Below, piece after piece: positions 9,236 to 52,379 of a stretch of DNA of 64,000 nt. The position numbers were made by a program, and so were the translations under genes. The stretch is from Hyalangium minutum (GTDB lineage Bacteria; Myxococcota; Myxococcia; Myxococcales; Myxococcaceae). The first letter of the stretch is position 1; each line of letters opens with the position of its first letter. The stretch is from contig NZ_JMCB01000009.1 of the NCBI RefSeq assembly GCF_000737315.1, forward strand, positions 186,001 to 250,000, in the 5' to 3' direction. Under the pieces are notes generated by a model. The model saw only the letters and a list, made by a program, of their open reading frames with translations, was not told where the DNA came from and did not search any database.

Positions 9236-9294
9236 GGTGGGCGCTCCCTGAACCGAAGAGTGGAAGTCGATAACCTGCCTCGCACCCTACTCCG

Positions 9295-10635
9295 TCACAG
9301 ACGGCCGTGGGGAACCCGTCCCTGCTTCAGCGCCTCCACCTGCATGAAGGTGAAGGGTTGATCGTAGAGCACCCGGTCCTGCTGCCGCGTCCGGAAGAGA
9401 TCGACGATGAGGTTCATCCGATCCCCCAGGTCGCCCCAGTCCCTCGCCGCGCTCCCCGCCGTATCGTTCGGTGTTCGGTCCAGCGTCGCCATCAGCGAGA
9501 CGAGCTCCGGGTGCCCCAAGCGCGCGAGCGTGGGCGGGAAGTCCCGCTCGGCGTTCAGCGCCGGGATGTCCTCCCCGAGCCGCAGCGTCACATCCGGCAG
9601 CTCCAGCCGCATCAGCGATCGCGTCATCAGCTCCCGCCACAGCCGCTCCAGCTTGCCGGCGAGCGGACTGAAGGCGGCCTTCAGCGACATCTCGTGAAAC
9701 GGGCTCCCCTTGCGCGCCGACGTCACCCCCATCAGCTCCACCACCTGATCGAGGACCACCTGCCGCAGCGGCGCATGCAGCGCGCCCAGGATCGGCCCCT
9801 GGAGCCGGGTCTGCTCGTGGTAGCCCACCAGCGCGTTGGCCAGGAAGATGCGCTCGGCCCGCGCCTTGGTGTCCTGCTCGAACATGGCCTCGTAGGAGTG
9901 GGTAAAGGCCCGGATCAGCAGATCCTGTCCCTCACGAGACACTGGCCCCCGCGAGAGCCTGCCCAGGAACCGATCCAGCGTCGCCTGCTCGTACTGCTCG
10001 CTGTCCGAGAAGTGCTCGATCATGGCCACGAACAGTGGCGCGAGCTCCTCGAAGACCAGGAGATTGCCCCGAGCGACGTGCCGGGCCACCTCGTCCGCGA
10101 TCTGCTGGATGGCCCGCGTGAGCACCGTCTGGATGCCGAAGGGCGCCGCCCACGAGCCCAGCAACTCCGCCTGCAGCCCTCCCACGCTCCGCGTGAGCGA
10201 GTCCGCGCGGTCCAGCATCTCCCGGCTCAGAGAGGGCACCACCTCCTTGCGGATGAAGAACCCGGCCGTCTTCGAGGCCCACGTGGCGTGCGCGCACCAG
10301 GAGACGTTTTCCTCCCCGAGCAAGTCCGTCAGGGCGGTTGTCAGGACATGGTACGTGTGTGTGATGTGGAGGTTGCGCAGGACCGGGTCGGTCATGCGAA
10401 GAATCGCCTCGATCTCCGACGCCGTGGGGACCGGCCAGAAACGAGGCAGCGTGCCCCTCACCACCACGAGCCGCTCCGCCGCCAGCGAAGGAGCCGAGAC
10501 CCGGGTCCCCGTCCTCGGTCGCGCGGTGCGGCCCGAGCGCCCCCTCTGCGCACGCCCCGATCGGGGTGTGCCCGAGGGCCTCCCAGGGCTCTGCCGTGAC
10601 GATCGCCGGGGTCCCATTGCCCGCTCCTTGCCCAT
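9295..10635 (-). CDS. Hypothetical protein (possibly DUF2515-like)
   Basis: Strong GC3 bias and conserved-looking motifs NLHITHTYH, WCAHATWASKTAG, HEQTRLQ. The R/P-rich N-terminus may be an over-extension. Confidence 0.6.
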   Translation of the reverse strand: MGKERAMGPRRSSRQSPGRPSGTPRSGRAQRGRSGRTARPRTGTRVSAPSLAAERLVVVRGTLPRFWPVPTASEIEAILRMTDPVLRNLHITHTYHVLTTALTDLLGEENVSWCAHATWASKTAGFFIRKEVVPSLSREMLDRADSLTRSVGGLQAELLGSWAAPFGIQTVLTRAIQQIADEVARHVARGNLLVFEELAPLFVAMIEHFSDSEQYEQATLDRFLGRLSRGPVSREGQDLLIRAFTHSYEAMFEQDTKARAERIFLANALVGYHEQTRLQGPILGALHAPLRQVVLDQVVELMGVTSARKGSPFHEMSLKAAFSPLAGKLERLWRELMTRSLMRLELPDVTLRLGEDIPALNAERDFPPTLARLGHPELVSLMATLDRTPNDTAGSAARDWGDLGDRMNLIVDLFRTRQQDRVLYDQPFTFMQVEALKQGRVPHGRL

Positions 10636-10683
10636 GGGAGGCAGCGACCCGTGAGGCGAGCGCCTGCCTGATCCCCTGCTGGA

Positions 10684-12486
10684 TCAGACGATGCGGAACA
10701 CCCGCCCTGTGGGCACGAAGGGCAGGTGCCGCCCCTGCGGCAGCAGGAAGGCGTGCTCGCGCCGGAGCTGAAGCCGGTCGCACTCTCCATCCGTGATGAT
10801 GAGGATGGGCCCCTGTTTCGGGAAGTCCTCGGCTCGCTCCAAGAGATCGATCCCTGGCTGGAGGACCGTGCCACCTCGGCCGCGCACCCGCACCCGCTCG
10901 GCGATGGCCTCGGGTGCGACATAGCCTTCGTCGTACGCCACTGCGTCACAGAAGACGAGCCGCACCCGGGACACGTCCCGCGCCAAGCTGTAGCTCGCGA
11001 TGGCCCCGAGCGCCTTGGCCAGCAGCTTGCGGTCCATGGAGCCTGACGTGTCCAGCACCACCCCGAAGGTTCTCCCCTCCTGGGATTCCTCCCGAGGCAC
11101 CCACAGCGGCCGAGGAATGTCAGGGGTGGCCGACTGGCGCCGGCTGAGCCGTGTGTACGTCCGCCGCTTCTCCAGCGGGGAGAAGTGCGCGTCGAACCAC
11201 TGCGCCAACTCCACGTCCCATGGAATGGGCGGCTGATCCAGTGCGCGGATCTCCTCCACCAGGCCCGCAGGCAGGAAGCCCCGGCCCTCGGACTGGTGGT
11301 ACGCGAGTCCCTGCGACAAGCAGCGCCGGTAGAAGGCATCGAGCGTCATGCCATCGCCGTGCAGCCACCACTCGGGAGTGGTCCCGTCCAGCATGTCCCC
11401 GAGCCCGTAGCCGCGCAGCGTGGCCAGCTTCCGGTAGCGGCGCACGTCCGTGACAATCCGATCGTAGATGGCCTCCGCAGACAGCCCCTTGAGCTCGGGA
11501 TCGTAGAGGACGCCGAAGCTCGGCAGCTCGCCGACGCCCATCTCCACCAGCCAGCCGTTCACCACGTAGTCGCAGGCGACGTTCCACAGATAGGGATCCC
11601 GCCCCTGGCGGCGTGACTGGTGACGCAGGCCCACGTGAAGCAGTTCGTGCGCGATGACGAAGCGAGCGCTGCCCTCGTACAGCCCGGCCGAGGGGTTCAC
11701 GTAGATCTCCCGCGCCTCCTCGTCCACCGCCGCCACGGTGATCTGCATCCGCTGACAGACCAGCGGATCCTCCACCAGAGTGAAGTGCGCCGCGAGCGAG
11801 CCGAGCAGGGGGAACCGGGAGATGAACCACGAGCGCGCCCGCGAGGCCTCCGTGTGCACGCGCTCGCGCGGACTCATGGACTGCCGCAGCCCCGCAGCCA
11901 GCTCCACCGCCGAGTCCACCGCCTGCACGAGCCCCTGGGCCAGCAGCTTCTCCCAGTCCTGCTCCTGGCGGGTACTGGCCATTCCCACATCGACCATGTC
12001 GTAAGAGTTCGGGCCCGCCGCCCCGCAGCCCGCCAGCTTGGGAGGAATGCCGTCGCGAACGAAGCTCTCGTACAACCGCTCCTCGCTCTTGGAGCCGAAG
12101 TCCAGCTCCACCAGCATGTCCTCCGGCGGACGTCCAAACTTCAGATCCTTCAGGAAGCGCGCCACGAAGCAGTCGCACGCCGTCTGCCAAGCCACGGGCT
12201 CGGGGACGAGCTTGAAGTGGCCCAGTCCCAGGTGCAGCAGGCAGTGGGCGATGACGTAGGCCCACTCCTCCACCGAGCCGCGCCGCTTGGGATGCGCGTA
12301 GAGGACTCCGCCCGGGCCCACCACCATCCACCCGTTGGGCGGATACGGCGTGCTCTCGCGCCGGTACACAGCCGCACGCCACATCAGCGGGCCGAAGATG
12401 GGGTGGGCGCGCACCGTGCCGACGGCCTGCTCGAAGGCCTCAGTGGCGGGATCTCCTCCGCGCTTCTTGTCCTCCTTACGCGCCAT
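10684..12486 (-). CDS. DUF2201-type metallopeptidase + vWA protein with duplicated peptidase module
   Basis: AHCLLH and AHELLH motifs, each followed by an ACD motif; MIDAS VLDTSGSM, GGT and ITDG; overlaps the upstream ATPase by 11 bp. Confidence 0.85.
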   Translation of the reverse strand: MARKEDKKRGGDPATEAFEQAVGTVRAHPIFGPLMWRAAVYRRESTPYPPNGWMVVGPGGVLYAHPKRRGSVEEWAYVIAHCLLHLGLGHFKLVPEPVAWQTACDCFVARFLKDLKFGRPPEDMLVELDFGSKSEERLYESFVRDGIPPKLAGCGAAGPNSYDMVDVGMASTRQEQDWEKLLAQGLVQAVDSAVELAAGLRQSMSPRERVHTEASRARSWFISRFPLLGSLAAHFTLVEDPLVCQRMQITVAAVDEEAREIYVNPSAGLYEGSARFVIAHELLHVGLRHQSRRQGRDPYLWNVACDYVVNGWLVEMGVGELPSFGVLYDPELKGLSAEAIYDRIVTDVRRYRKLATLRGYGLGDMLDGTTPEWWLHGDGMTLDAFYRRCLSQGLAYHQSEGRGFLPAGLVEEIRALDQPPIPWDVELAQWFDAHFSPLEKRRTYTRLSRRQSATPDIPRPLWVPREESQEGRTFGVVLDTSGSMDRKLLAKALGAIASYSLARDVSRVRLVFCDAVAYDEGYVAPEAIAERVRVRGRGGTVLQPGIDLLERAEDFPKQGPILIITDGECDRLQLRREHAFLLPQGRHLPFVPTGRVFRIV

Positions 12487-45282: not shown

Positions 45283-46779
45283 TCAGGACGAGTCGACGTC
45301 CCGCGGCTTCCACAGGTGAGGCAGCAGCTCGTCGATGCGCGAGTGAGGGTGAGTCTGCACGCGCAGCAGCACGTCAGCCAGGTACAGCTCGGGGTTGAGG
45401 CCGTTGGCCTCACAGGTGGCCACCAGCGCGTACAGGCCCGCGAGGTTGGCCCCGGCCTGTTCGTGCCCGACGAAGAGGAAGTTCTTTCGGCCCAGCGCGG
45501 CCTTTCGCAGGGCTCCTTCAGAGCGGTTGTTATCCAGAGGCAGGCGCTCGTCCTGGGTGAAGTGGCCCAGCGCCAGCCACTGGTTGAGCGCATAGCGGAT
45601 GGCCTGCCCCAGAGGGCTCTTGGGCGGGTGCTGCGTGCGCTGGACTTGAAGCCACTCGTGTAGCCTCATGAGCACCGGGGAACTCATCTGTTGCCGCAGG
45701 GCACGGTGGGCCGCGGTGCGCACAATCCCGGCCTGCACGGCCTGGGCCTCCACGCGGTAGAGCGCGAGGATGAGGTCCAACGCTTGCTGCGCCTCGGGCG
45801 CGGTGGCCAGCGCGTCGAAAAACTTCCTGCGGACGTGGGCCCAACAGCCCACACGCACCCGCCCCCCCGGCAGTGTCACCGGGTTGTAGCCGGTGTACGC
45901 ATCCACCACGAGCGCGCCCTCGGTGCCGCCCAGCACCTGCTGAGGTGTCTTGCCCGAGCGGCCCATGCTGAAGCGGTAGCCGATGAGCCACTGTCCCTGC
46001 TCATTCTGGGTGAGAAAGGTCCACAGGTAGCCCAGCTTCGTCTTCTTCACCTGAAGCACGCGCACCGGCGTCTCATCGGCCCACACTACGGGGGCCTGGC
46101 TGATGAGCAGCAGCAGACGCGCGGCCAGCGGAGCCACCACCTCGGCGGCGCGATGGAACAAGTCCGTCAGCGTGCTGCGGCTCATGGGCACACCTCCTCG
46201 TTCCACGCGCTGGGCCAGCCGATGCAGGGGCATGGCGTCGGCACACTTGGAGGCCACCACGTGCGCGATGAAGCCGGGGCCGTACTCCCCCTTGTCCACC
46301 ACCTTGGGCGGCGGAGGCGCCGTCACCACGCCTTGCCCGCACGCGCACGCAAGCACCTGTTGCACGTGCACCTGCCGCTCGAAGCGCGGCGGAATGTATT
46401 CGTACAGGACGCTGGTGCGGCCCTGTCCCAGAGGCTTCAACTCGTGGCTGCCGCAGCAAGGACACTGGCGCTGCTGCTCGGACACCGCGTGGTGCACCTG
46501 TCGAGTCACAGCCCCGTCCGCCCTGCGGGCCGCGCGCTGCCTTCTGTTCTCCAGGGCCGCCTGGGCTCTGGCTGCAGCCTCCTGCTCAGACTGCTCGCCC
46601 CGCAGCTGCTGCTGCACACCTGGCAGCCGCTCGGCTTTCTTTCCGAACACATGCCGCTCCAAGGCGGCCATCTTCGCCTCGAGCGTGGTGAGCCGCTCGC
46701 GCAGCTCCTCGGCCTCTTCTCTCCAGGGGCAGAAATGGTCTAACGGCAGCTCTCGGGGCACCGGCTTCCAACAACCCAC
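45283..46779 (-). CDS. tnpC: IS66 transposase TnpC
   Basis: FGKKAER, CPCCG zinc finger, WADETP, VDAY, CWAHVRRKF, DNNRSE, LVATCEANG. Confidence 0.95.
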   Translation of the reverse strand: MGCWKPVPRELPLDHFCPWREEAEELRERLTTLEAKMAALERHVFGKKAERLPGVQQQLRGEQSEQEAAARAQAALENRRQRAARRADGAVTRQVHHAVSEQQRQCPCCGSHELKPLGQGRTSVLYEYIPPRFERQVHVQQVLACACGQGVVTAPPPPKVVDKGEYGPGFIAHVVASKCADAMPLHRLAQRVERGGVPMSRSTLTDLFHRAAEVVAPLAARLLLLISQAPVVWADETPVRVLQVKKTKLGYLWTFLTQNEQGQWLIGYRFSMGRSGKTPQQVLGGTEGALVVDAYTGYNPVTLPGGRVRVGCWAHVRRKFFDALATAPEAQQALDLILALYRVEAQAVQAGIVRTAAHRALRQQMSSPVLMRLHEWLQVQRTQHPPKSPLGQAIRYALNQWLALGHFTQDERLPLDNNRSEGALRKAALGRKNFLFVGHEQAGANLAGLYALVATCEANGLNPELYLADVLLRVQTHPHSRIDELLPHLWKPRDVDSS

Positions 46780-46804
46780 CGGGTAGGCGCACTTCCCTCC
46801 TACT

Positions 46805-47173
46805 TCACGAGGCGGCTGTGCGGTTGGGGGGCTCCCAGGCAGCGGGCCGTTTCACCTCCGCCACATCGATACCATCCAGCACCATCGCCAGCTGCGTGGC
46901 ATCCAGCCTCACAGACTGCGCATCCGCCTCCACCGGCGGCAGCCGGAACCGGCCTTGCTCCAGGCGCTTGTAGTACAGGATGAAGCCGCCCCGGCTGAAG
47001 GTGAGAATCTTTACCCGGTCCCCCCTCCGACTGACGAAGACAAACAGATGCCCGGAGTAGACGTCCTCGCCAAAGCTGGAGCGCACCACCGCCATCAGTC
47101 CGTCGATGGACTTGCGCATGTCCACCGGCTCGGTGGCCAATACAATGCGCACCGCCGAGGGCAGCGTCAGCAC
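46805..47173 (-). CDS. tnpB: IS66 accessory protein TnpB
   Basis: PVDMRKSIDGL, LFVF.SRRGDRVKIL, YKRLEQGRF; GTG start overlapping the tnpA stop. Confidence 0.93.
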   Translation of the reverse strand: MLTLPSAVRIVLATEPVDMRKSIDGLMAVVRSSFGEDVYSGHLFVFVSRRGDRVKILTFSRGGFILYYKRLEQGRFRLPPVEADAQSVRLDATQLAMVLDGIDVAEVKRPAAWEPPNRTAAS

Positions 47174-47496
47174 GAGCCACCACGCTCCAGCGCCGCCACC
47201 AACTGCGCCACGTAGGATACGTCCGTGCCCATCGTGAAGCTCACGCGCACGCCCCTGGCGGTGAGCACCTCCATCTTCCCCGCGCTGCTCATGGCCGGCG
47301 CGGCCACCTCCACCGGCAGCAGGCGCACAGGCGGTGCACTGGGCGCGGCCACTTGGCGCCTCCGCCGGTAAACCCACGACTGCACGGTACTCAGCGGCAG
47401 CCCTTGCTGCTGGGCGAACTGCTTCTGCGTCAGTCCGCTCTGCTCAAACTGCTCGGCGATGCGGACCCACTGCGGCTTGTCGGCTGGCTTGGTCAT
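47167..47496 (-). CDS. tnpA: IS66 accessory protein TnpA (HTH)
   Basis: W..IAEQFEQSGLTQKQFAQQQG...W..R pattern. Confidence 0.88.
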   Translation of the reverse strand: MTKPADKPQWVRIAEQFEQSGLTQKQFAQQQGLPLSTVQSWVYRRRRQVAAPSAPPVRLLPVEVAAPAMSSAGKMEVLTARGVRVSFTMGTDVSYVAQLVAALERGGSC

Positions 47497-47924: not shown

Positions 47925-49127
47925 TCACGGTGCGGCATCGAGCACTCTTCCCCTCGGAGCCATTGGCGGAGTTGCTGACGACTCAGCAACCCCCGTCACC
48001 CTGGCCCGCTCAAGTTCCGAGTTCAGCCAGTCCCGGAAGAAGAAGGTGCTGGTGAATGACAGTCCCTCTTTTGTGCTCAAGCCCGAAATCCCCACCAGCC
48101 ACCGTCCCTCCCCCTCCTCCCGGAAGCACGGCCCACCGTCGAAGCCCTCGTAGAGAGAGGACCCCTGCTGTGCGTACAGCGCTCGAGGGTCCTCCGAAGT
48201 GGGAGCCCGCGTCACCTGACTCTTCTTGAAGTAGCGAGCCCCATGACGCCCCCCTACGACGCGATCATGGCCATAACCGGTCATCATGAGGGATTCCTGC
48301 GCCTGAACCTCGGAGTCAGGAAGCCGCACGTCCACGGCGGGAGGTCCCTCAGGTTGATCCAACAAGACCACTGCGAGATCAGCAGAGCTCGTTCTCGCGG
48401 CTCCCGCTTCATCCAAGAGAAGTTTGAAGCGGGGATGAGAACGGACCTGCCCCTCAAAGGAGCGAATCCGGAGGGTAGGCCTCTCTGGGTTCTCCGAGGC
48501 TTCGTAGGTGACGGTCGTCACACTGGCGCGTGCCGAGCAGTCAGTCCCGTCGATGAGCGTCCCCTGCCCTCCCTCCGGGAGAACCACCTGACGCCGTGGG
48601 CAAACACAGTGTGCCGCCGTGAGCGCAAGCCGGGGATGGAGGAGAATGCCGCTACAACCGCCATTCACACTCAAGCCCTGCGGGGCCACCATGACGGTGG
48701 ATGCGTATTGATTCGCACGGTCCAACGTTCCCGCATGATCGAGCAGGCGCCTGTCGAACGGCTGGAACTCCAGATTCCCGGGTGCCCCGCCGCCCCGCAT
48801 CTGTTGCTGCGCCTCGGAAGCTTCGGGCCCTGCGGGCCGCGCCGACGAGGCGCTAGAACGGCCGGGTTCAGCGGACGGGGGCGCATCCTTGGAACACCCG
48901 TGGCTCAAGGCCACGGCGCCCATCGTGAACACCGTGGGGAGAAGCCCGCTGCTCGTATGCCGCCAGTTCAAGTTCCTCCCCGAAGTGCCCTGGTCGCAGA
49001 CCCACATCGGTCCTTTCATCCTCTGTACGCTCGCTGAGGAGCATAGCAGACTCAGGGTGGACACCCCGTCGCGCTCTGCCGGTGCACGCGCGTGCGTGCA
49101 CCGGCTCCCCCTGAATGTCCGCGCCAA
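47925..49127 (-). CDS. Trypsin-like fold lipoprotein lacking the catalytic Ser
   Basis: CSGILL, TAAHC and ADLAV are present, but GFDGGP replaces GDSGGP; lipobox SHGC. True start is probably near 49007 or later. Confidence 0.75.
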   Translation of the reverse strand: MARTFRGSRCTHARAPAERDGVSTLSLLCSSASVQRMKGPMWVCDQGTSGRNLNWRHTSSGLLPTVFTMGAVALSHGCSKDAPPSAEPGRSSASSARPAGPEASEAQQQMRGGGAPGNLEFQPFDRRLLDHAGTLDRANQYASTVMVAPQGLSVNGGCSGILLHPRLALTAAHCVCPRRQVVLPEGGQGTLIDGTDCSARASVTTVTYEASENPERPTLRIRSFEGQVRSHPRFKLLLDEAGAARTSSADLAVVLLDQPEGPPAVDVRLPDSEVQAQESLMMTGYGHDRVVGGRHGARYFKKSQVTRAPTSEDPRALYAQQGSSLYEGFDGGPCFREEGEGRWLVGISGLSTKEGLSFTSTFFFRDWLNSELERARVTGVAESSATPPMAPRGRVLDAAP

Positions 49128-49708
49128 ACTCCCCTGCCCTGCATCCGTCGACGTGGACCGCCCTCAAGATGTCGGGGGTGCTTCAGAGCACCGAGCACGG
49201 GCTCATCCAGAACTTCTACGGCACACAGAGCGCCAAGCGCAGCCAGGTTCCCTTCATGAACCACATTCATGAAGGGCTGGCAGTCATGCTCTGCACCGGC
49301 GCATCGCTTCAGGCGATGCGAGCGTTCTGCCTGCACCCGCTCGTTCAGAGCGACGCGGATCTAAAGAGCCAGTACGCCCAGATCACCCGGGCGCTGGAGA
49401 CTGTTCCTGACGGGGCCTTCGTGTTGGGACTCGCCATGGAGTACCGCTCCGTGGCCAACGAGTACGTCTCGCATCGCCCCATGCCACCCGAAGGCATCCG
49501 GCTCTCCCCACTGGCGGAGGTCAACGCCATGCTGGTGGGTGACAAAGTTCAGAACCGCAAGGACTTCGAGCTGTACCACGCGGAGACGCACGAACGCCGC
49601 GATCGGCTCGCCGAGTACTTCCAGCAGTGGTGCCAAGCGTTGCAGATCGAGCCGCTCTACCCTCAGTTCAAGGCGATGCTACAGGGCGCGGAGTGGACGG
49701 GCTCGTGA
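49115..49708 (+). CDS. Hypothetical protein, possibly divergent HD-fold
   Basis: PFMNH...FCLHPLVQSD...DKVQNRKD loosely follows the SpoT/Mesh1 hydrolase pattern with HD replaced by HP. Confidence 0.5.
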   Translation: MSAPNSPALHPSTWTALKMSGVLQSTEHGLIQNFYGTQSAKRSQVPFMNHIHEGLAVMLCTGASLQAMRAFCLHPLVQSDADLKSQYAQITRALETVPDGAFVLGLAMEYRSVANEYVSHRPMPPEGIRLSPLAEVNAMLVGDKVQNRKDFELYHAETHERRDRLAEYFQQWCQALQIEPLYPQFKAMLQGAEWTGS

Positions 49709-49808
49709 GTGCAGGCTGCGTGTTGCCGAACCCAGTTCCTCGTAAATGGGCACCCAAGAGCGGAAGATGCTGACGAACGCCTCGGCACGGCCGTACCAAG
49801 AAGAGTCG

Positions 49809-50525
49809 ATGAGCCGCTACTACTGGATCCGTGAGGCGCGGGAGCCTCGGCAGACCGGCCACCTCGACGCCTCCCACCCGTGGGGGTTGCCGGGTCTGAG
49901 CTGTCCCACCTGTGGCGTGACCTGGGCTGGAAGCGCTTCGGCTTTCCCCAGCGTGGATCTCACGTCACTGCCCGAGCGCGCCGCGTTCGAGAAAGCCCAG
50001 CCGGAGCCCCTCGATGAATTCGCGCGCCGGCGGGAGTTGGTCCGTCCGCTGGTGCCGCCCGGCGCGCAGCTTTTGCCAGGAGTGGAGTTTGGTCCGTTGG
50101 AAGGAACGGCTTCTGGCTCTTTTGGCCAGTTCTTCCTTCAGAGCGCATGGATGCCGCTCATCCGCCGAGAAGCATGGGAGCGCCTTCAGTCGGCAGGGTT
50201 GCGAGGGCTGCGAGCGTTTCCCACCCGGCTTCGCTTTCGTCAAAAGAACCCGCCGGAGTTGCTTGAACTGGAACTGACCGCGCAGGGAAACCTTCACCCG
50301 GATTGCTTCTTGCCAGAGTTCCCCACGCGCTGTGCGCACTGCGACCGCCTCGGCGCCCGCCGTCCAGAGATTATGATCCTGGAGGCAGCCTCTTTGCCTG
50401 ATCAATGCGATTTGTTCCGGCTGGCCGACTTCGAGACAACTCTGATCGGCACGGAGCGCTTCATGAATACCGTGCGGCGTTTAGGGCTGGATGGTGCCGA
50501 ATGCGATGCTCTTACCGTGCGGTGA
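49809..50525 (+). CDS. Double-CXXCG motif protein (SitI6-type immunity), orphan
   Basis: HPWGLPGLSCPTCG and CAHCDRLG, DLFRLADF; no cognate toxin adjacent. Confidence 0.8.
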   Translation: MSRYYWIREAREPRQTGHLDASHPWGLPGLSCPTCGVTWAGSASAFPSVDLTSLPERAAFEKAQPEPLDEFARRRELVRPLVPPGAQLLPGVEFGPLEGTASGSFGQFFLQSAWMPLIRREAWERLQSAGLRGLRAFPTRLRFRQKNPPELLELELTAQGNLHPDCFLPEFPTRCAHCDRLGARRPEIMILEAASLPDQCDLFRLADFETTLIGTERFMNTVRRLGLDGAECDALTVR

Positions 50526-50731
50526 CCCTAGAGTCCGGAGCGCCTGTGGAGGTTCGACATCTGCTCCGTGCAGTCTTGCAGGTGAGGAAGCAAGAACCTA
50601 CTACTCCTGACCGAGAGCAGGGATCCAGCGCCATCCCCATCCCACCTGACCGCCTGTTCAGATAACACCTACGGGCTTCCTTGTCTTAGGAAGAGCTATC
50701 GTTTCAAGCGTCTCGAAAGGACGGCGCGACG

Positions 50732-51949
50732 ATGGCAACCCACTCCCCAAAGCGTGCACCCCAGCTCAAAGGCATCTCAACCGATAGCGCGCCGCAGGAG
50801 CCTCCTCCTCGCGATTACGTCGAGTACTTCAAATCAATTAACCTTGTCCTTGGACCACGCCTCGGTGTTGGCGGCTCGGGTAACGTCTACCGGGCTACCC
50901 AGACGCGCCTGAGGCGAGATCTTGCAATCAAACTCTTCGATCACCAAAGGTTCCGCGCAGATCCCAATGGCAGGAAGCGATTCGAGCACGAGGCACGTAT
51001 GCTCGCCATCGCTCAACACCCTTCCATCCCTTTCGTGATCTCGTCTGGCGACATGCCCATGCGTGGCGAAGCGCCAATACCCTACATCATCATGCAGTTC
51101 ATTGATGGTACCAGTCTGGAGACAGTAGTCGAAAAAAGCCGAACTGCTCCGCAACTCGCAGCCTCCTACATGAAGCAGGTTCTAGCTGCCTTGTCTTGCG
51201 CTCATTCGCACCGCCTCGTGCATCGAGACGTTAAGCCAGCTAACATTCTCCTCTCGAAAGACGGGCACTGCTATCTCATCGACTTTTCGATAGGAGTGAG
51301 TTTAGGTGTCATCCCCGGACTAACACGAATCACTGGAGAAGGGCGACACCCTGCCACATGGCGGTACGCATCTCCGGAACAGATAGAAGGGCGCGATGTC
51401 GATCACCGCACTGACCTTTATTCTGCCGGACTCGTCCTTTTTGAACTGCTTGCAGGCCGCCGCATCTCAATGCCCGAGGTTCCTGCTGCTGACATGTTGC
51501 AACTACCTCCTGTTGCCAAGGAACTACTCCGTAAAGCGTGCCATTCCGATCCTGCACAACGCTTTCAGACTGCTAAGGAATTCCTTGGAGCGTTGAACCG
51601 CCTAGAGGCACCTGGCATCAGTCGATCGGAGCCTCGAGACGCGCTTTGCCTTAACCTTACATGTGCTACTTGGGACCAGTTTACAGGCGAATATGAGAAT
51701 CCCCTAGTTGTAGAGGCAACCACCAAATCGTTCTGCAAGGATTGCAGATCTCCTTTAGTCTATCCTTGCGCACAATGCGGCGCAGAATACGACAATGCTC
51801 CTTTCTGCGCAGACTGCGGGCACCAGCACTACACCATTCCCAGTTGCGCAAAGTGCGGCAATCGCCTCACCTTTTTGGATGCCAATAAAAACACAATTCT
51901 CGCTGGGTGCTCTAGGTGCCCATCCTCTGAAGATGATATTCCCTTCTGA
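50732..51949 (+). CDS. Ser/Thr protein kinase with C-terminal multi-zinc-ribbon and EDDIPF tail; AT-rich
   Basis: GVGGSG, AIK, HRDVKPANI, DFS, ASPEQ, DLYSAG; six CxxC-type motifs; many A/T-ending codons. Confidence 0.88.
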   Translation: MATHSPKRAPQLKGISTDSAPQEPPPRDYVEYFKSINLVLGPRLGVGGSGNVYRATQTRLRRDLAIKLFDHQRFRADPNGRKRFEHEARMLAIAQHPSIPFVISSGDMPMRGEAPIPYIIMQFIDGTSLETVVEKSRTAPQLAASYMKQVLAALSCAHSHRLVHRDVKPANILLSKDGHCYLIDFSIGVSLGVIPGLTRITGEGRHPATWRYASPEQIEGRDVDHRTDLYSAGLVLFELLAGRRISMPEVPAADMLQLPPVAKELLRKACHSDPAQRFQTAKEFLGALNRLEAPGISRSEPRDALCLNLTCATWDQFTGEYENPLVVEATTKSFCKDCRSPLVYPCAQCGAEYDNAPFCADCGHQHYTIPSCAKCGNRLTFLDANKNTILAGCSRCPSSEDDIPF

Positions 51950-51959
51950 TTATCAGTCC

Positions 51960-52260
51960 GCGGGGAGTTCACATCCACAAGGACGCGATCGCTGTCAGAC
52001 AAATCAGCAATGACATACCAAGATCCAGATCCACCCATGTGTCCGAATTTCGCATATATGCGGGCTCTTTGGATCTAGGACAATCCGCGAAATATTTGAC
52101 TTGGAAGAGCCGCTCCATTGCTGTGCAAAAAGAATGCACACATTTCCAGTTCTAGACGCCATTTTTGCTGCTTCTCAAAAGCCTCAATCTCTTCAGGAGC
52201 AACGGAAGCATTGGGAAAGTGATGGGAGGAGAGTTCCTTCAACAAGGGCTCGATTGACAT
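51960..52260 (-). pseudogene. SMI1/KNR4-family immunity gene remnant
   Basis: MSIEPLLKELSSHHFPN...EEIEAFE...FFLHSNGA in one frame and GSWYVIADLSDSDRVLVDV in another. Frameshifted and truncated next to the kinase 3' end; downstream boundary approximate. Confidence 0.6.
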
Positions 52261-52379
52261 AGGTTTCAGCCCGCAGATGCCCAATTAGCCACGAACCCTT
52301 GTCCACAGAAAAGGGACTTCCCGGAAGGGTGGCAAATCCCGCAAGGTGCGCGGATCACCTCCGCCCCGGGAAGGTTCCC

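Follow-up and report, generated by a model that had tools for sequence, protein, structure and literature searches.

Within a 64,000-nucleotide stretch of the Hyalangium minutum genome (contig NZ_JMCB01000009.1, positions 186,001 to 250,000; hereafter the window, numbered from its first letter), we examined a gene at positions 50732-51949 of the forward strand that begins with ATG, ends with a TGA stop codon at 51947-51949 and encodes a protein of 405 amino acids. Three parts are joined in this protein: a Hanks-type Ser/Thr kinase domain (residues 42-278; 50855-51565), a module with 12 cysteines (C306-C396; 51647-51919) and a C-terminal hexapeptide, E-D-D-I-P-F (51929-51946), which resembles the DDDIPF tip of bacterial SSB (single-stranded DNA-binding protein) and is set off from the last cysteine by a three-residue linker, P-S-S (51920-51928). 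All of these features lie on the forward strand. A first reading of the DNA (the original prediction) had taken the gene for a horizontally acquired kinase with a tail that imitates SSB and for a candidate single-gene defence system, and the protein end on which it built, SSEDDIPF followed by the stop codon with EDDIPF at 51929-51946, was confirmed exactly.

The gene had also been described as AT-rich, and its GC content is indeed 54.1%, compared to 67.7% in the remainder of the window. Composition profiles place it in a low-GC patch at approximately 50500-52284 (GC 0.45-0.60, against 0.65-0.70 around it), which holds the kinase gene together with a downstream gene remnant. Since the ratio of non-synonymous to synonymous substitution rates (dN/dS) between the window gene and an 83%-identical homologue at locus L001 is 0.115 overall (0.069 in the kinase domain and 0.137 in the cysteine module), we consider the window gene to be a working gene under purifying selection.

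A kinase with a cysteine module and an SSB-like tail

The kinase domain was recognized by the Pfam model Pkinase (PF00069; 2.5e-33, 116 bits against a cut-off of 31.7). On the forward strand it contains, in order, a Gly-rich loop, LGVGGSGNV (50861-50887), an AIK motif with the ATP-anchoring Lys67 (50924-50932), the catalytic loop HRDVKPANI with H164, R165, D166 and N171 (51221-51247), and the triplet DFS (D184, F185 and S186; 51281-51289), which stands in the DFG position and opens the activation segment. In an alignment of 81 full-length members of the family to which the protein belongs, K67, the helix-C glutamate E87, H164, R165, D166, N171 and D184 were invariant, in agreement with the intact catalytic loop noted at the outset. 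The change from DFG to DFS, which had likewise been pointed out, proved to be a conserved variant of the whole family: the window protein has Ser186 in place of the canonical DFG glycine, and D184, F185, S186 and G188 ("DFSIG") were invariant across the same 81 sequences. Given that S186 and G188 are both invariant, DFS is a family signature rather than a decayed DFG motif. Within the activation segment, T198 was found in 77 of the 81 members and T201 in every one of them. An AlphaFold model built from the family alignment reached a mean predicted local distance difference test score (pLDDT) of 90 and a predicted template modelling score (pTM) of 0.76, and its kinase part superposed on PknB from Mycobacterium tuberculosis (5u94), the best match in the PDB (E 3.6e-22; TM score 0.86 on the target). 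Judged from its sequence, the window protein is a member of the Hanks-type Ser/Thr kinase superfamily with all catalytic residues in place, and it is most likely catalytically active.

The distribution of the C-terminal hexapeptide indicates that it is not a product of chance. We inspected 9388 stop-to-stop segments of at least 100 amino acids from 2.84 Mb of DNA, made up of the window and 167 loci retrieved for unrelated purposes. A loosened pattern of the tail, [DE][DEGNS][ILVM]PF followed by a stop, was confined to eight genes of the family and a single phage helicase. When 5.8 billion proteins were searched, we obtained about 90 homologues of around 400 amino acids that aligned over at least 90% of the query with 34-83% identity. 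Of the 87 full-length homologues, 85 had a C-terminal [ILVM]P[FY], and 55 of those 85 ended in exactly DDDIPF. Variant ends such as DLDDEIPF, DDDLPF and DDDVPF also occur, in members that come from metagenome contigs. When the last six positions were counted over 132 distinct family sequences, the consensus residues occurred as D100, D112, D112, I123, P132 and F131, of which only the counts at positions -6 to -4 are unbiased because the set had been chosen for an [ILVM]P[FY] end. Conservation of the tail among homologues had been set beforehand as a check on the original prediction, and it came out in favour, with overall identity falling to about 35%.

Between the last cysteine and the tip, members of the family carry an unconserved linker of 1-34 residues. 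In most of them this is a low-complexity stretch of 11-34 amino acids rich in Ser, Pro, Lys, Ala, Arg and Gln, in some it is Gly- or Gln/Pro-rich, and in the myxobacterial clade of the window protein it is reduced to 2-3 residues. In most members, the conserved tip on a variable, low-complexity tether recalls the layout of SSB itself, and the Gly- or Gln/Pro-rich versions are reminiscent of its disordered linker. Most family members end in the same hexapeptide as the SSB C-terminus (SSB-Ct; ...MDFDDDIPF), with EDDIPF in the window protein, and many also carry F/D at position -7, as does Escherichia coli SSB. In contrast to bacterial SSB, the kinase family has no oligonucleotide/oligosaccharide-binding (OB) fold, for which Pfam, NCBIfam and a fold search were all negative, and no sign of ssDNA binding or tetramerization, and its body consists of the kinase and the cysteine-rich module. 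By its domain content, the window protein is a mimic of the SSB tail and not a member of the SSB family. In the structural models the tail residues were of low confidence (pLDDT 54-61), as expected for a free tail, and were not docked in cis; the tail is accordingly predicted by the models to be a free, disordered and exposed end. We consider it quite probable that the tail is a functional mimic of SSB-Ct.

The sharing of an SSB-type tail by an enzyme that is not an SSB has a precedent in phage T7. The terminal Phe of the T7 SSB, gp2.5, is essential, and a DTDF peptide mimicking the tail of the gp4 helicase served to position the gp2.5 tail on the polymerase (PMC12339929); gp4 and gp2.5 share an acidic, Phe-ended tail for docking on the same partner surface. 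These two are replication proteins of one replisome, whereas the family described here consists of signalling enzymes on mobile, defence-associated DNA. A further non-SSB bearer of an SSB-type tip was found on the IMG/VR contig IMGVR_UViG_3300021604_000003 (L112), where a 760-aa frame on the forward strand (9271-11550) ends in ...GIPDDEIPF. This phage protein is a superfamily 2 (SF2) helicase (ResIII, Helicase_C) that carries a UPF0547 zinc ribbon, a low-complexity linker and the DDEIPF end.

The cysteines between kinase and tail form one Cx4C pair (C306/C311) and five CxxC pairs starting at C335, C346, C359, C372 and C393. Six CxxC-type motifs had originally been claimed; five of them are CxxC as stated, and the sixth is the Cx4C pair. 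Eleven of the 12 cysteines were invariant and C338 was present in at least 90% of members, and their number would be enough for three Cys4 zinc sites. Although modelled with a pLDDT of 86-94, the module matched no family in Pfam or NCBIfam, apart from faint zinc-ribbon matches in some members only, and a comparison of its fold with the PDB and BFVD gave no significant structural relative; its best sequence match to a solved structure was to the zinc knuckles of methionyl-tRNA synthetase (MetRS; E=0.07). We considered whether the module could be a zinc ribbon that binds single-stranded DNA (ssDNA), which would turn the C-terminal half of the protein into an SSB analogue. This idea was unsupported: no significant fold match was obtained in the PDB or BFVD, and the net charge of the module averages +0.5 across the family, leaving no basis for a DNA-binding label.

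The module diverges faster than the kinase to which it is attached. The two closest members are 69% identical in the cysteine module and 90% in the kinase, and the family-wide pairwise identity, with the cysteines excluded, is 36% and 46%, respectively. It is likely that the module is a fast-evolving sensor or regulator. A profile of the module and tail, run against 1.84 billion representative proteins, retrieved 68 proteins at E<=1e-10. We asked of these whether the two parts form a portable unit that is also found on other effectors, and rejected that possibility, as every full match was a family kinase or a fragment of one; the same result shows the cysteine module to be family-specific, the family falling into about 65 clusters at 50% identity.

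Genomic setting of the kinase genes

We compared 13 loci, namely the window and twelve others (L001-L007, L168-L171 and L199). The flanking genes differed at all loci examined, and an all-against-all blastp comparison of the immediate neighbours in eight loci revealed no shared gene. With no conserved partner in these eight loci, two-gene, toxin-antitoxin and kinase-phosphatase systems were dropped from consideration. The claim of horizontal acquisition gained support from two sides. First, in every high-GC host the kinase gene is poorer in GC than its flanks, by 10-19 points. Second, blastn similarity between the window and L001, at about 80% nucleotide identity, is limited to 50656-51949, that is, to the gene and the 76 nt upstream of it, and breaks off at the gene edges; on the right-hand side the TGA stop codon (51947-51949, forward strand) is itself the limit of the common sequence. 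The alignable 76-nt leader (50656-50731, forward strand) is the probable promoter and ribosome-binding site region of the mobile unit, in which a search for a sigma-70 consensus found none.

In Aliivibrio wodanis (JBREXA010000001.1; L002), the kinase gene (10001-11215) is located between attC-type repeats at 9840-9974 and 11243-11365, which belong to repeat families recurring throughout an array headed by an integron integrase (TIGR02249; 374.6 bits against a cut-off of 265). Because this one cassette holds only the kinase gene, we regard the kinase as a self-sufficient unit. The notion of a single-gene system is thereby supported as far as the single gene is concerned, there being no conserved neighbour and no other open reading frame (ORF) in the Aliivibrio cassette. 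Only for the Aliivibrio homologue does the status of integron cassette hold; the copy in the window lies outside any integron. The array as a whole (L002, 1-21215) is a chromosomal integron with two attC-type repeat families of 13 and 8 copies, interrupted by two near-identical IS91-type insertions (Y2 transposase). Its cassettes include SLATT and phospholipase D (PLD) genes, with products assigned to PLDc_2, FRG, SLATT_5 and ASCH, in addition to duplicated acetyltransferases.

The distribution of the family is patchy, covering Myxococcota and, among the Gammaproteobacteria, Aliivibrio, Photobacterium, Microbulbifer and Ca. Parabeggiatoa. A tblastn search of 50,697 phage records and 72,556 plasmids found no family member, only matches confined to the kinase domain, and scans of 2.9 million IMG/VR contigs for the motif [YF]LIDFSIG produced 27 matches, all due to chance and unsupported by tblastn.

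Enrichment in defence islands was another check attached to the original prediction, and here the outcome leaned in its favour: a recognized defence gene lies within 10 kb at 7 of the 13 loci, a count that is suggestive and not a statistic as it has no genome-wide background. Genes of mobile elements or conflict systems are present at nearly all loci, and most of those outside the seven have mobile-element or toxin-immunity genes. The kinase directly adjoins a type I restriction-modification (R-M) system at L171 (HsdM, HsdS and HsdR, the last with 611.6 bits), with an Mrr-like gene and RhuM, and at L170 a full-length type IIG R-M enzyme (PADLOC E=0) is 5 kb away, accompanied by an FRG/PDC-S15 gene and a VapC pair. 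At L169 it adjoins a 1637-aa methyltransferase-SNF2 helicase. In Sorangium (L006), PD-Lambda-1 (3e-153) lies 2.3 kb from the kinase, with a PemK toxin nearby, and in Melittangium (L005) the kinase is followed by an SpbK-like Toll/interleukin-1 receptor (TIR) protein, an AAA_25 ATPase, an excisionase-like helix-turn-helix (HTH) protein and an integrase. The Stigmatella gene (L168) sits in a prophage-like setting between a terminase-portal-protease-capsid block and an integrase. At L007 an RHS toxin, RadC and type IV secretion genes are found nearby, which resembles a type IV secretion system (T4SS) or integrative and conjugative element (ICE), and at L001 and L004 the kinase adjoins pairs of AHH nuclease toxin and Imm11. 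The Microbulbifer gene (L003) is beside IS110. The remaining locus, L199, is an integrase-bearing island in which an HNH gene immediately precedes the kinase and an Abi_alpha gene lies at a distance of 2.4 kb. The seven loci counted above are those with the type I R-M system, the type IIG R-M enzyme, the methyltransferase-helicase, PD-Lambda-1, the SpbK-like TIR protein, Abi_alpha and, in the integron of L002, the SLATT and PLD cassettes.

Two of these neighbourhoods have additional features of their own. In Archangium violaceum (CP137851.1; L004, 8418-13972), the kinase and the AHH toxin/Imm11 pair immediately follow ftsA where the mur-fts cell-division cluster ends, and so occupy the spot at which one would normally look for ftsZ. 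At L005 (4460-9610) and L168 (728-4638), a DUF2381 gene stands beside kinases of about 600 and 380 amino acids, a few kb from the kinase with the SSB-like tail. We considered L005 and L168 as examples of one conserved element type and rejected this, since the tblastx similarity between them outside the family gene is at the level of the kinase domain only.

The surroundings of the window gene itself begin, 3.2 kb upstream of the kinase, with an IS66-family element of three ORFs on the reverse strand (45283-47496), comprising the transposase DDE_Tnp_IS66 (45283-46779; 3e-83), TnpB_IS66 (46805-47377) and a small HTH protein (47167-47496). The gene that adjoins the kinase encodes a Gmx_para_CXXCG protein (49746-50525, forward strand; family match 2.7e-81) and is preceded on the same strand by a 197-aa ORF (49115-49708) that matches no family. 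These two genes (49115-50525) may constitute a toxin-immunity-like pair; the Gmx_para_CXXCG protein weakly resembles the Imm11 immunity protein of L001 (blastp E 0.12). Downstream of the kinase, the low-GC patch contains overlapping short ORFs on the reverse strand (51969-52284), whose joined frames match SMI1_KNR4 at E 0.013, under the cut-off, and which appear to be what is left of a SUKH-1/SMI1_KNR4 immunity gene after frameshifting.

N-terminal extensions and an abortive infection domain

In two members of the family, P0064 (513 aa) and P0266 (510 aa, encoded at L199), an AbiJ_NTD3 domain precedes the kinase, the cysteine module and a (D)D[IV]PF end. These proteins come from independent sources and are 59% identical. 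The AbiJ_NTD3 assignment of P0064 scored 172.6 bits against a cut-off of 32.5 (6e-51), and that of P0266 is a precomputed PF18860 annotation. Their AbiJ_NTD3 domains are about 50% identical to the N-termini of proteins that combine AbiJ_NTD3 with Abi_C and that are named "abortive infection family protein" or "AbiJ-related protein" in their sources. The N-terminal domain is thus common to these AbiJ-type proteins and to P0064 and P0266, whereas the C-terminal part is the effector Abi_C (PF14355) in the former and the kinase, cysteine module and tail in the latter. As AbiJ_NTD3 stands before the kinase unit in P0064 and P0266, the kinase takes the place usually held by the abortive infection effector, which adds to the support for the original prediction. 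Abi_C was found in none of the family members scanned, and Pfam detected no AbiJ domain in the window protein.

Other N-terminal additions were found within the N-terminal 100-320 residues of P0157, P0045 and P0164. One domain, which we call A, is common to the N-termini of P0157 and P0045 (45% identity, 8e-35), and another, B, to those of P0164 and P0045 (7e-14); P0045 carries A and B in tandem, and Pfam recognizes neither of them.

The tails of N-extended members are frequently altered. Canonical tails were present in 3 of 8 such members, compared to 94 of 109 standard members (Fisher p=0.004), a statistic that is weak because the N-extended set is small, belongs in part to one clade and includes one extension that is likely a gene-calling artefact. 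The degenerate or shortened versions include CDFPF, CTLPF, CDLPF and CNIRF.

Proposed function and alternative explanations

The SSB tip is a common docking code of bacterial genome maintenance, and of many phage proteins that exploit it. It is highly conserved, contacts at least 18 genome-maintenance proteins and is portable, in that enhanced green fluorescent protein (eGFP) bearing the SSB tip alone became enriched in SSB droplets under crowding (10.1101/797431). With these properties in mind, we propose that the kinase travels between genomes as a one-gene module and acts in conflicts with phages or mobile elements, its tail being plugged into the SSB-interaction network. The exposed tail would insert into the SSB-Ct-binding pockets of SSB-interacting proteins; these may be enzymes of the host that act in replication restart, recombination and repair, or else phage proteins relying on that docking code. 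Once docked, such partners would be held at the kinase and so become its preferred substrates, and their phosphorylation would then stall either the invader or the infected cell in its replication or recombination, with the cysteine module serving as a sensor or regulator. Tail-pocket binding, the substrates, the trigger of the kinase and the defence outcome are steps that we infer from the sequence and its comparisons. We give this proposal, taken as a whole, about an even chance of being correct. Its more general element, that the gene has a role in conflict or defence, is probable in view of the settings and fusions of the family; given such a role, it appears to us roughly evenly balanced whether the tail docks substrates or instead serves as bait or in binding SSB.

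Several points weigh against our proposal. The window gene has no canonical defence system around it, its neighbours being IS66, paralogous myxobacterial families and the immunity-gene remnant, and the number of family loci with a nearby defence gene has, as mentioned above, no background to be measured against. The similarity to PD-T4-6, a known defence kinase, likewise carries no weight: the best PADLOC match of the window protein (8e-60) covers the kinase domain only, while the PASTA kinase P0103 reached 3.6e-200 against these profiles and further generic kinases used as controls 1e-114 to 1e-128, and since housekeeping PASTA kinases score far better, the match means a kinase in general. 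We thus rejected membership in PD-T4-6. With one tail per monomer, docking would be weak and of a micromolar type if it resembles that of SSB-Ct, and mimicry of the host's cognate SSB is assumed here from the general conservation of the motif. Finally, the degenerate tails of N-extended members fit a tail that senses at least as well as one that docks substrates.

This last point leads to an explanation in which the tail is a bait. Here the tail would imitate host SSB, and phage proteins that bind the SSB tip, single-strand annealing recombinases and others, would bind it and switch the kinase on, making the tail the sensor and the kinase the effector. Phage recombinases of the RecT/Red-beta type need the last seven residues of host SSB for their function (PMC13490951), and phage SSB-like proteins ending in FDDDIPF already figure as triggers of defence, one being required for the activation of DRT10, which is also controlled by ExoI (10.64898/2026.04.29.721553). 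Phage recombinases are also reported to be targeted by unrelated defence systems (PMC11846896). The loss of canonical tails from N-extended members mildly favours a bait, because a separate sensor would relax selection on a sensing tail, but these members are few and in part come from one clade, and the degenerate tails mostly still end in PF. Moreover, nothing predicts how binding to the tail would activate the kinase, the tail not being docked in cis in the models, and abundant host SSB partners would bind as well, which poses a problem of autoimmunity. On balance we find the bait explanation possible though unlikely. If true, a near-universal dependency of phages on the SSB tip would become an immune trigger, and the kinase would be the first case found in bacterial immunity of a protein that senses by imitating a short linear motif of its host.

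Alternatively, the tail could bind SSB rather than the partners of SSB. The kinase would then be parked in SSB stores or condensates, held by the OB fold of free SSB from host or phage, until a surge of ssDNA, caused by infection or damage, displaced it and thereby released or activated it, with SSB or nearby proteins as substrates. The SSB tip does bind the OB fold at the ssDNA site, in competition with ssDNA, and takes a heterologous protein into SSB droplets on its own; the contact between tip and OB fold is, however, weak and salt-sensitive (10.1101/797431). An immune kinase activated by ssDNA, CapK, is known (PMC13373217), and several defence systems are reported to sense phage SSB or SSB-bound ssDNA. 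Against such a role stand the short linker of the window clade, only about three residues long, and the near-neutral cysteine module without a DNA-binding fold, which offers no independent link to ssDNA. We consider SSB binding improbable.

A comparably low probability attaches to the idea that the kinase is cargo working for the mobile element that carries it and not for the host. By means of its tail it would reach ExoI, RecQ, RecJ and other such enzymes and phosphorylate them, protecting incoming DNA or disarming defences, much as the T7 kinase is reported to disarm defences broadly by phosphorylation (PMC13645617). The occurrence of the gene in a prophage-like element, in integrase islands, in a T4SS/ICE-like region and near insertion sequence (IS) elements would suit this explanation. 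It is disfavoured by the absence of the family from the phage and plasmid collections and by the chance matches in IMG/VR, as well as by the AbiJ_NTD3 fusion and the R-M and abortive infection neighbours, which point to the defence side; integron cassettes, too, are known reservoirs of defence genes (PMC12614218).

It is very unlikely, in our estimation, that we are dealing with a routine signalling kinase of the host, one that controls DNA repair by way of SSB partners and plays no part in conflict. Myxobacterial genomes are rich in Ser/Thr kinases, of which myxobacteria have hundreds, no defence system adjoins the window gene, and the SSB network is a plausible target of DNA-damage signalling. 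A pure housekeeping role is nevertheless hard to reconcile with the patchy distribution over Myxococcota and Gammaproteobacteria, the deviant composition of the gene in high-GC hosts, a genomic context that is different in every genome and the location of one homologue in an integron cassette. Lastly, we rejected the ideas of an effector secreted by means of an acidic export signal at its C-terminus and of a polymorphic toxin with nearby immunity genes, on account of the lack of a trafficking domain and of a conserved immunity neighbour, and the export signal also because the tail matches SSB exactly and is not merely acidic.

Our proposal of a defence kinase directed by its tail can be set beside known systems. 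PD-T4-6, a kinase from a functional screen in E. coli (PMC9519451), is likewise a single-gene Ser/Thr kinase, and Stk2 of Staphylococcus epidermidis is a stand-alone Ser/Thr kinase that acts in abortive infection (Depardieu et al. 2016, as cited in PMC9519451). Stk2 resembles the window protein as a lone Hanks-type kinase proposed to defend the cell through phosphorylation of cellular proteins, and the two share the kinase fold. Stk2 is not known to have a 12-Cys module or an SSB-type tail. DRT10 and CapK show that the axis of SSB tip and ssDNA is already an information channel in bacterial immunity; the SSB-type protein of DRT10 is the phage's, CapK is a GHKL-type kinase with a partner substrate, and neither has been reported with an SSB tip on the immune protein itself. 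We found no description of this family, or of any kinase with an SSB tip, in full-text searches of the literature, and Pfam and NCBIfam contain no model for this kinase family. Nor did we find a report of a signalling enzyme that bears the SSB docking code, conserved in more than 100 sequences, on integron cassettes and in defence islands.

As an undescribed family found in phage-defence neighbourhoods, these kinases are a strong candidate for a new kind of single-gene immunity, a candidate system that would be kinase-based and rely on a new principle of targeting or sensing. Among the Gammaproteobacteria there are homologues that would fit E. coli or Vibrio as hosts. Should the tail function as it does in SSB, the family would couple protein phosphorylation to the SSB interactome by means of a single gene, and would provide a natural tool to ask which SSB partners are controlled by phosphorylation. 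In addition, it would point to a possible new immune logic, in which targeting or baiting is achieved through mimicry of a host motif.

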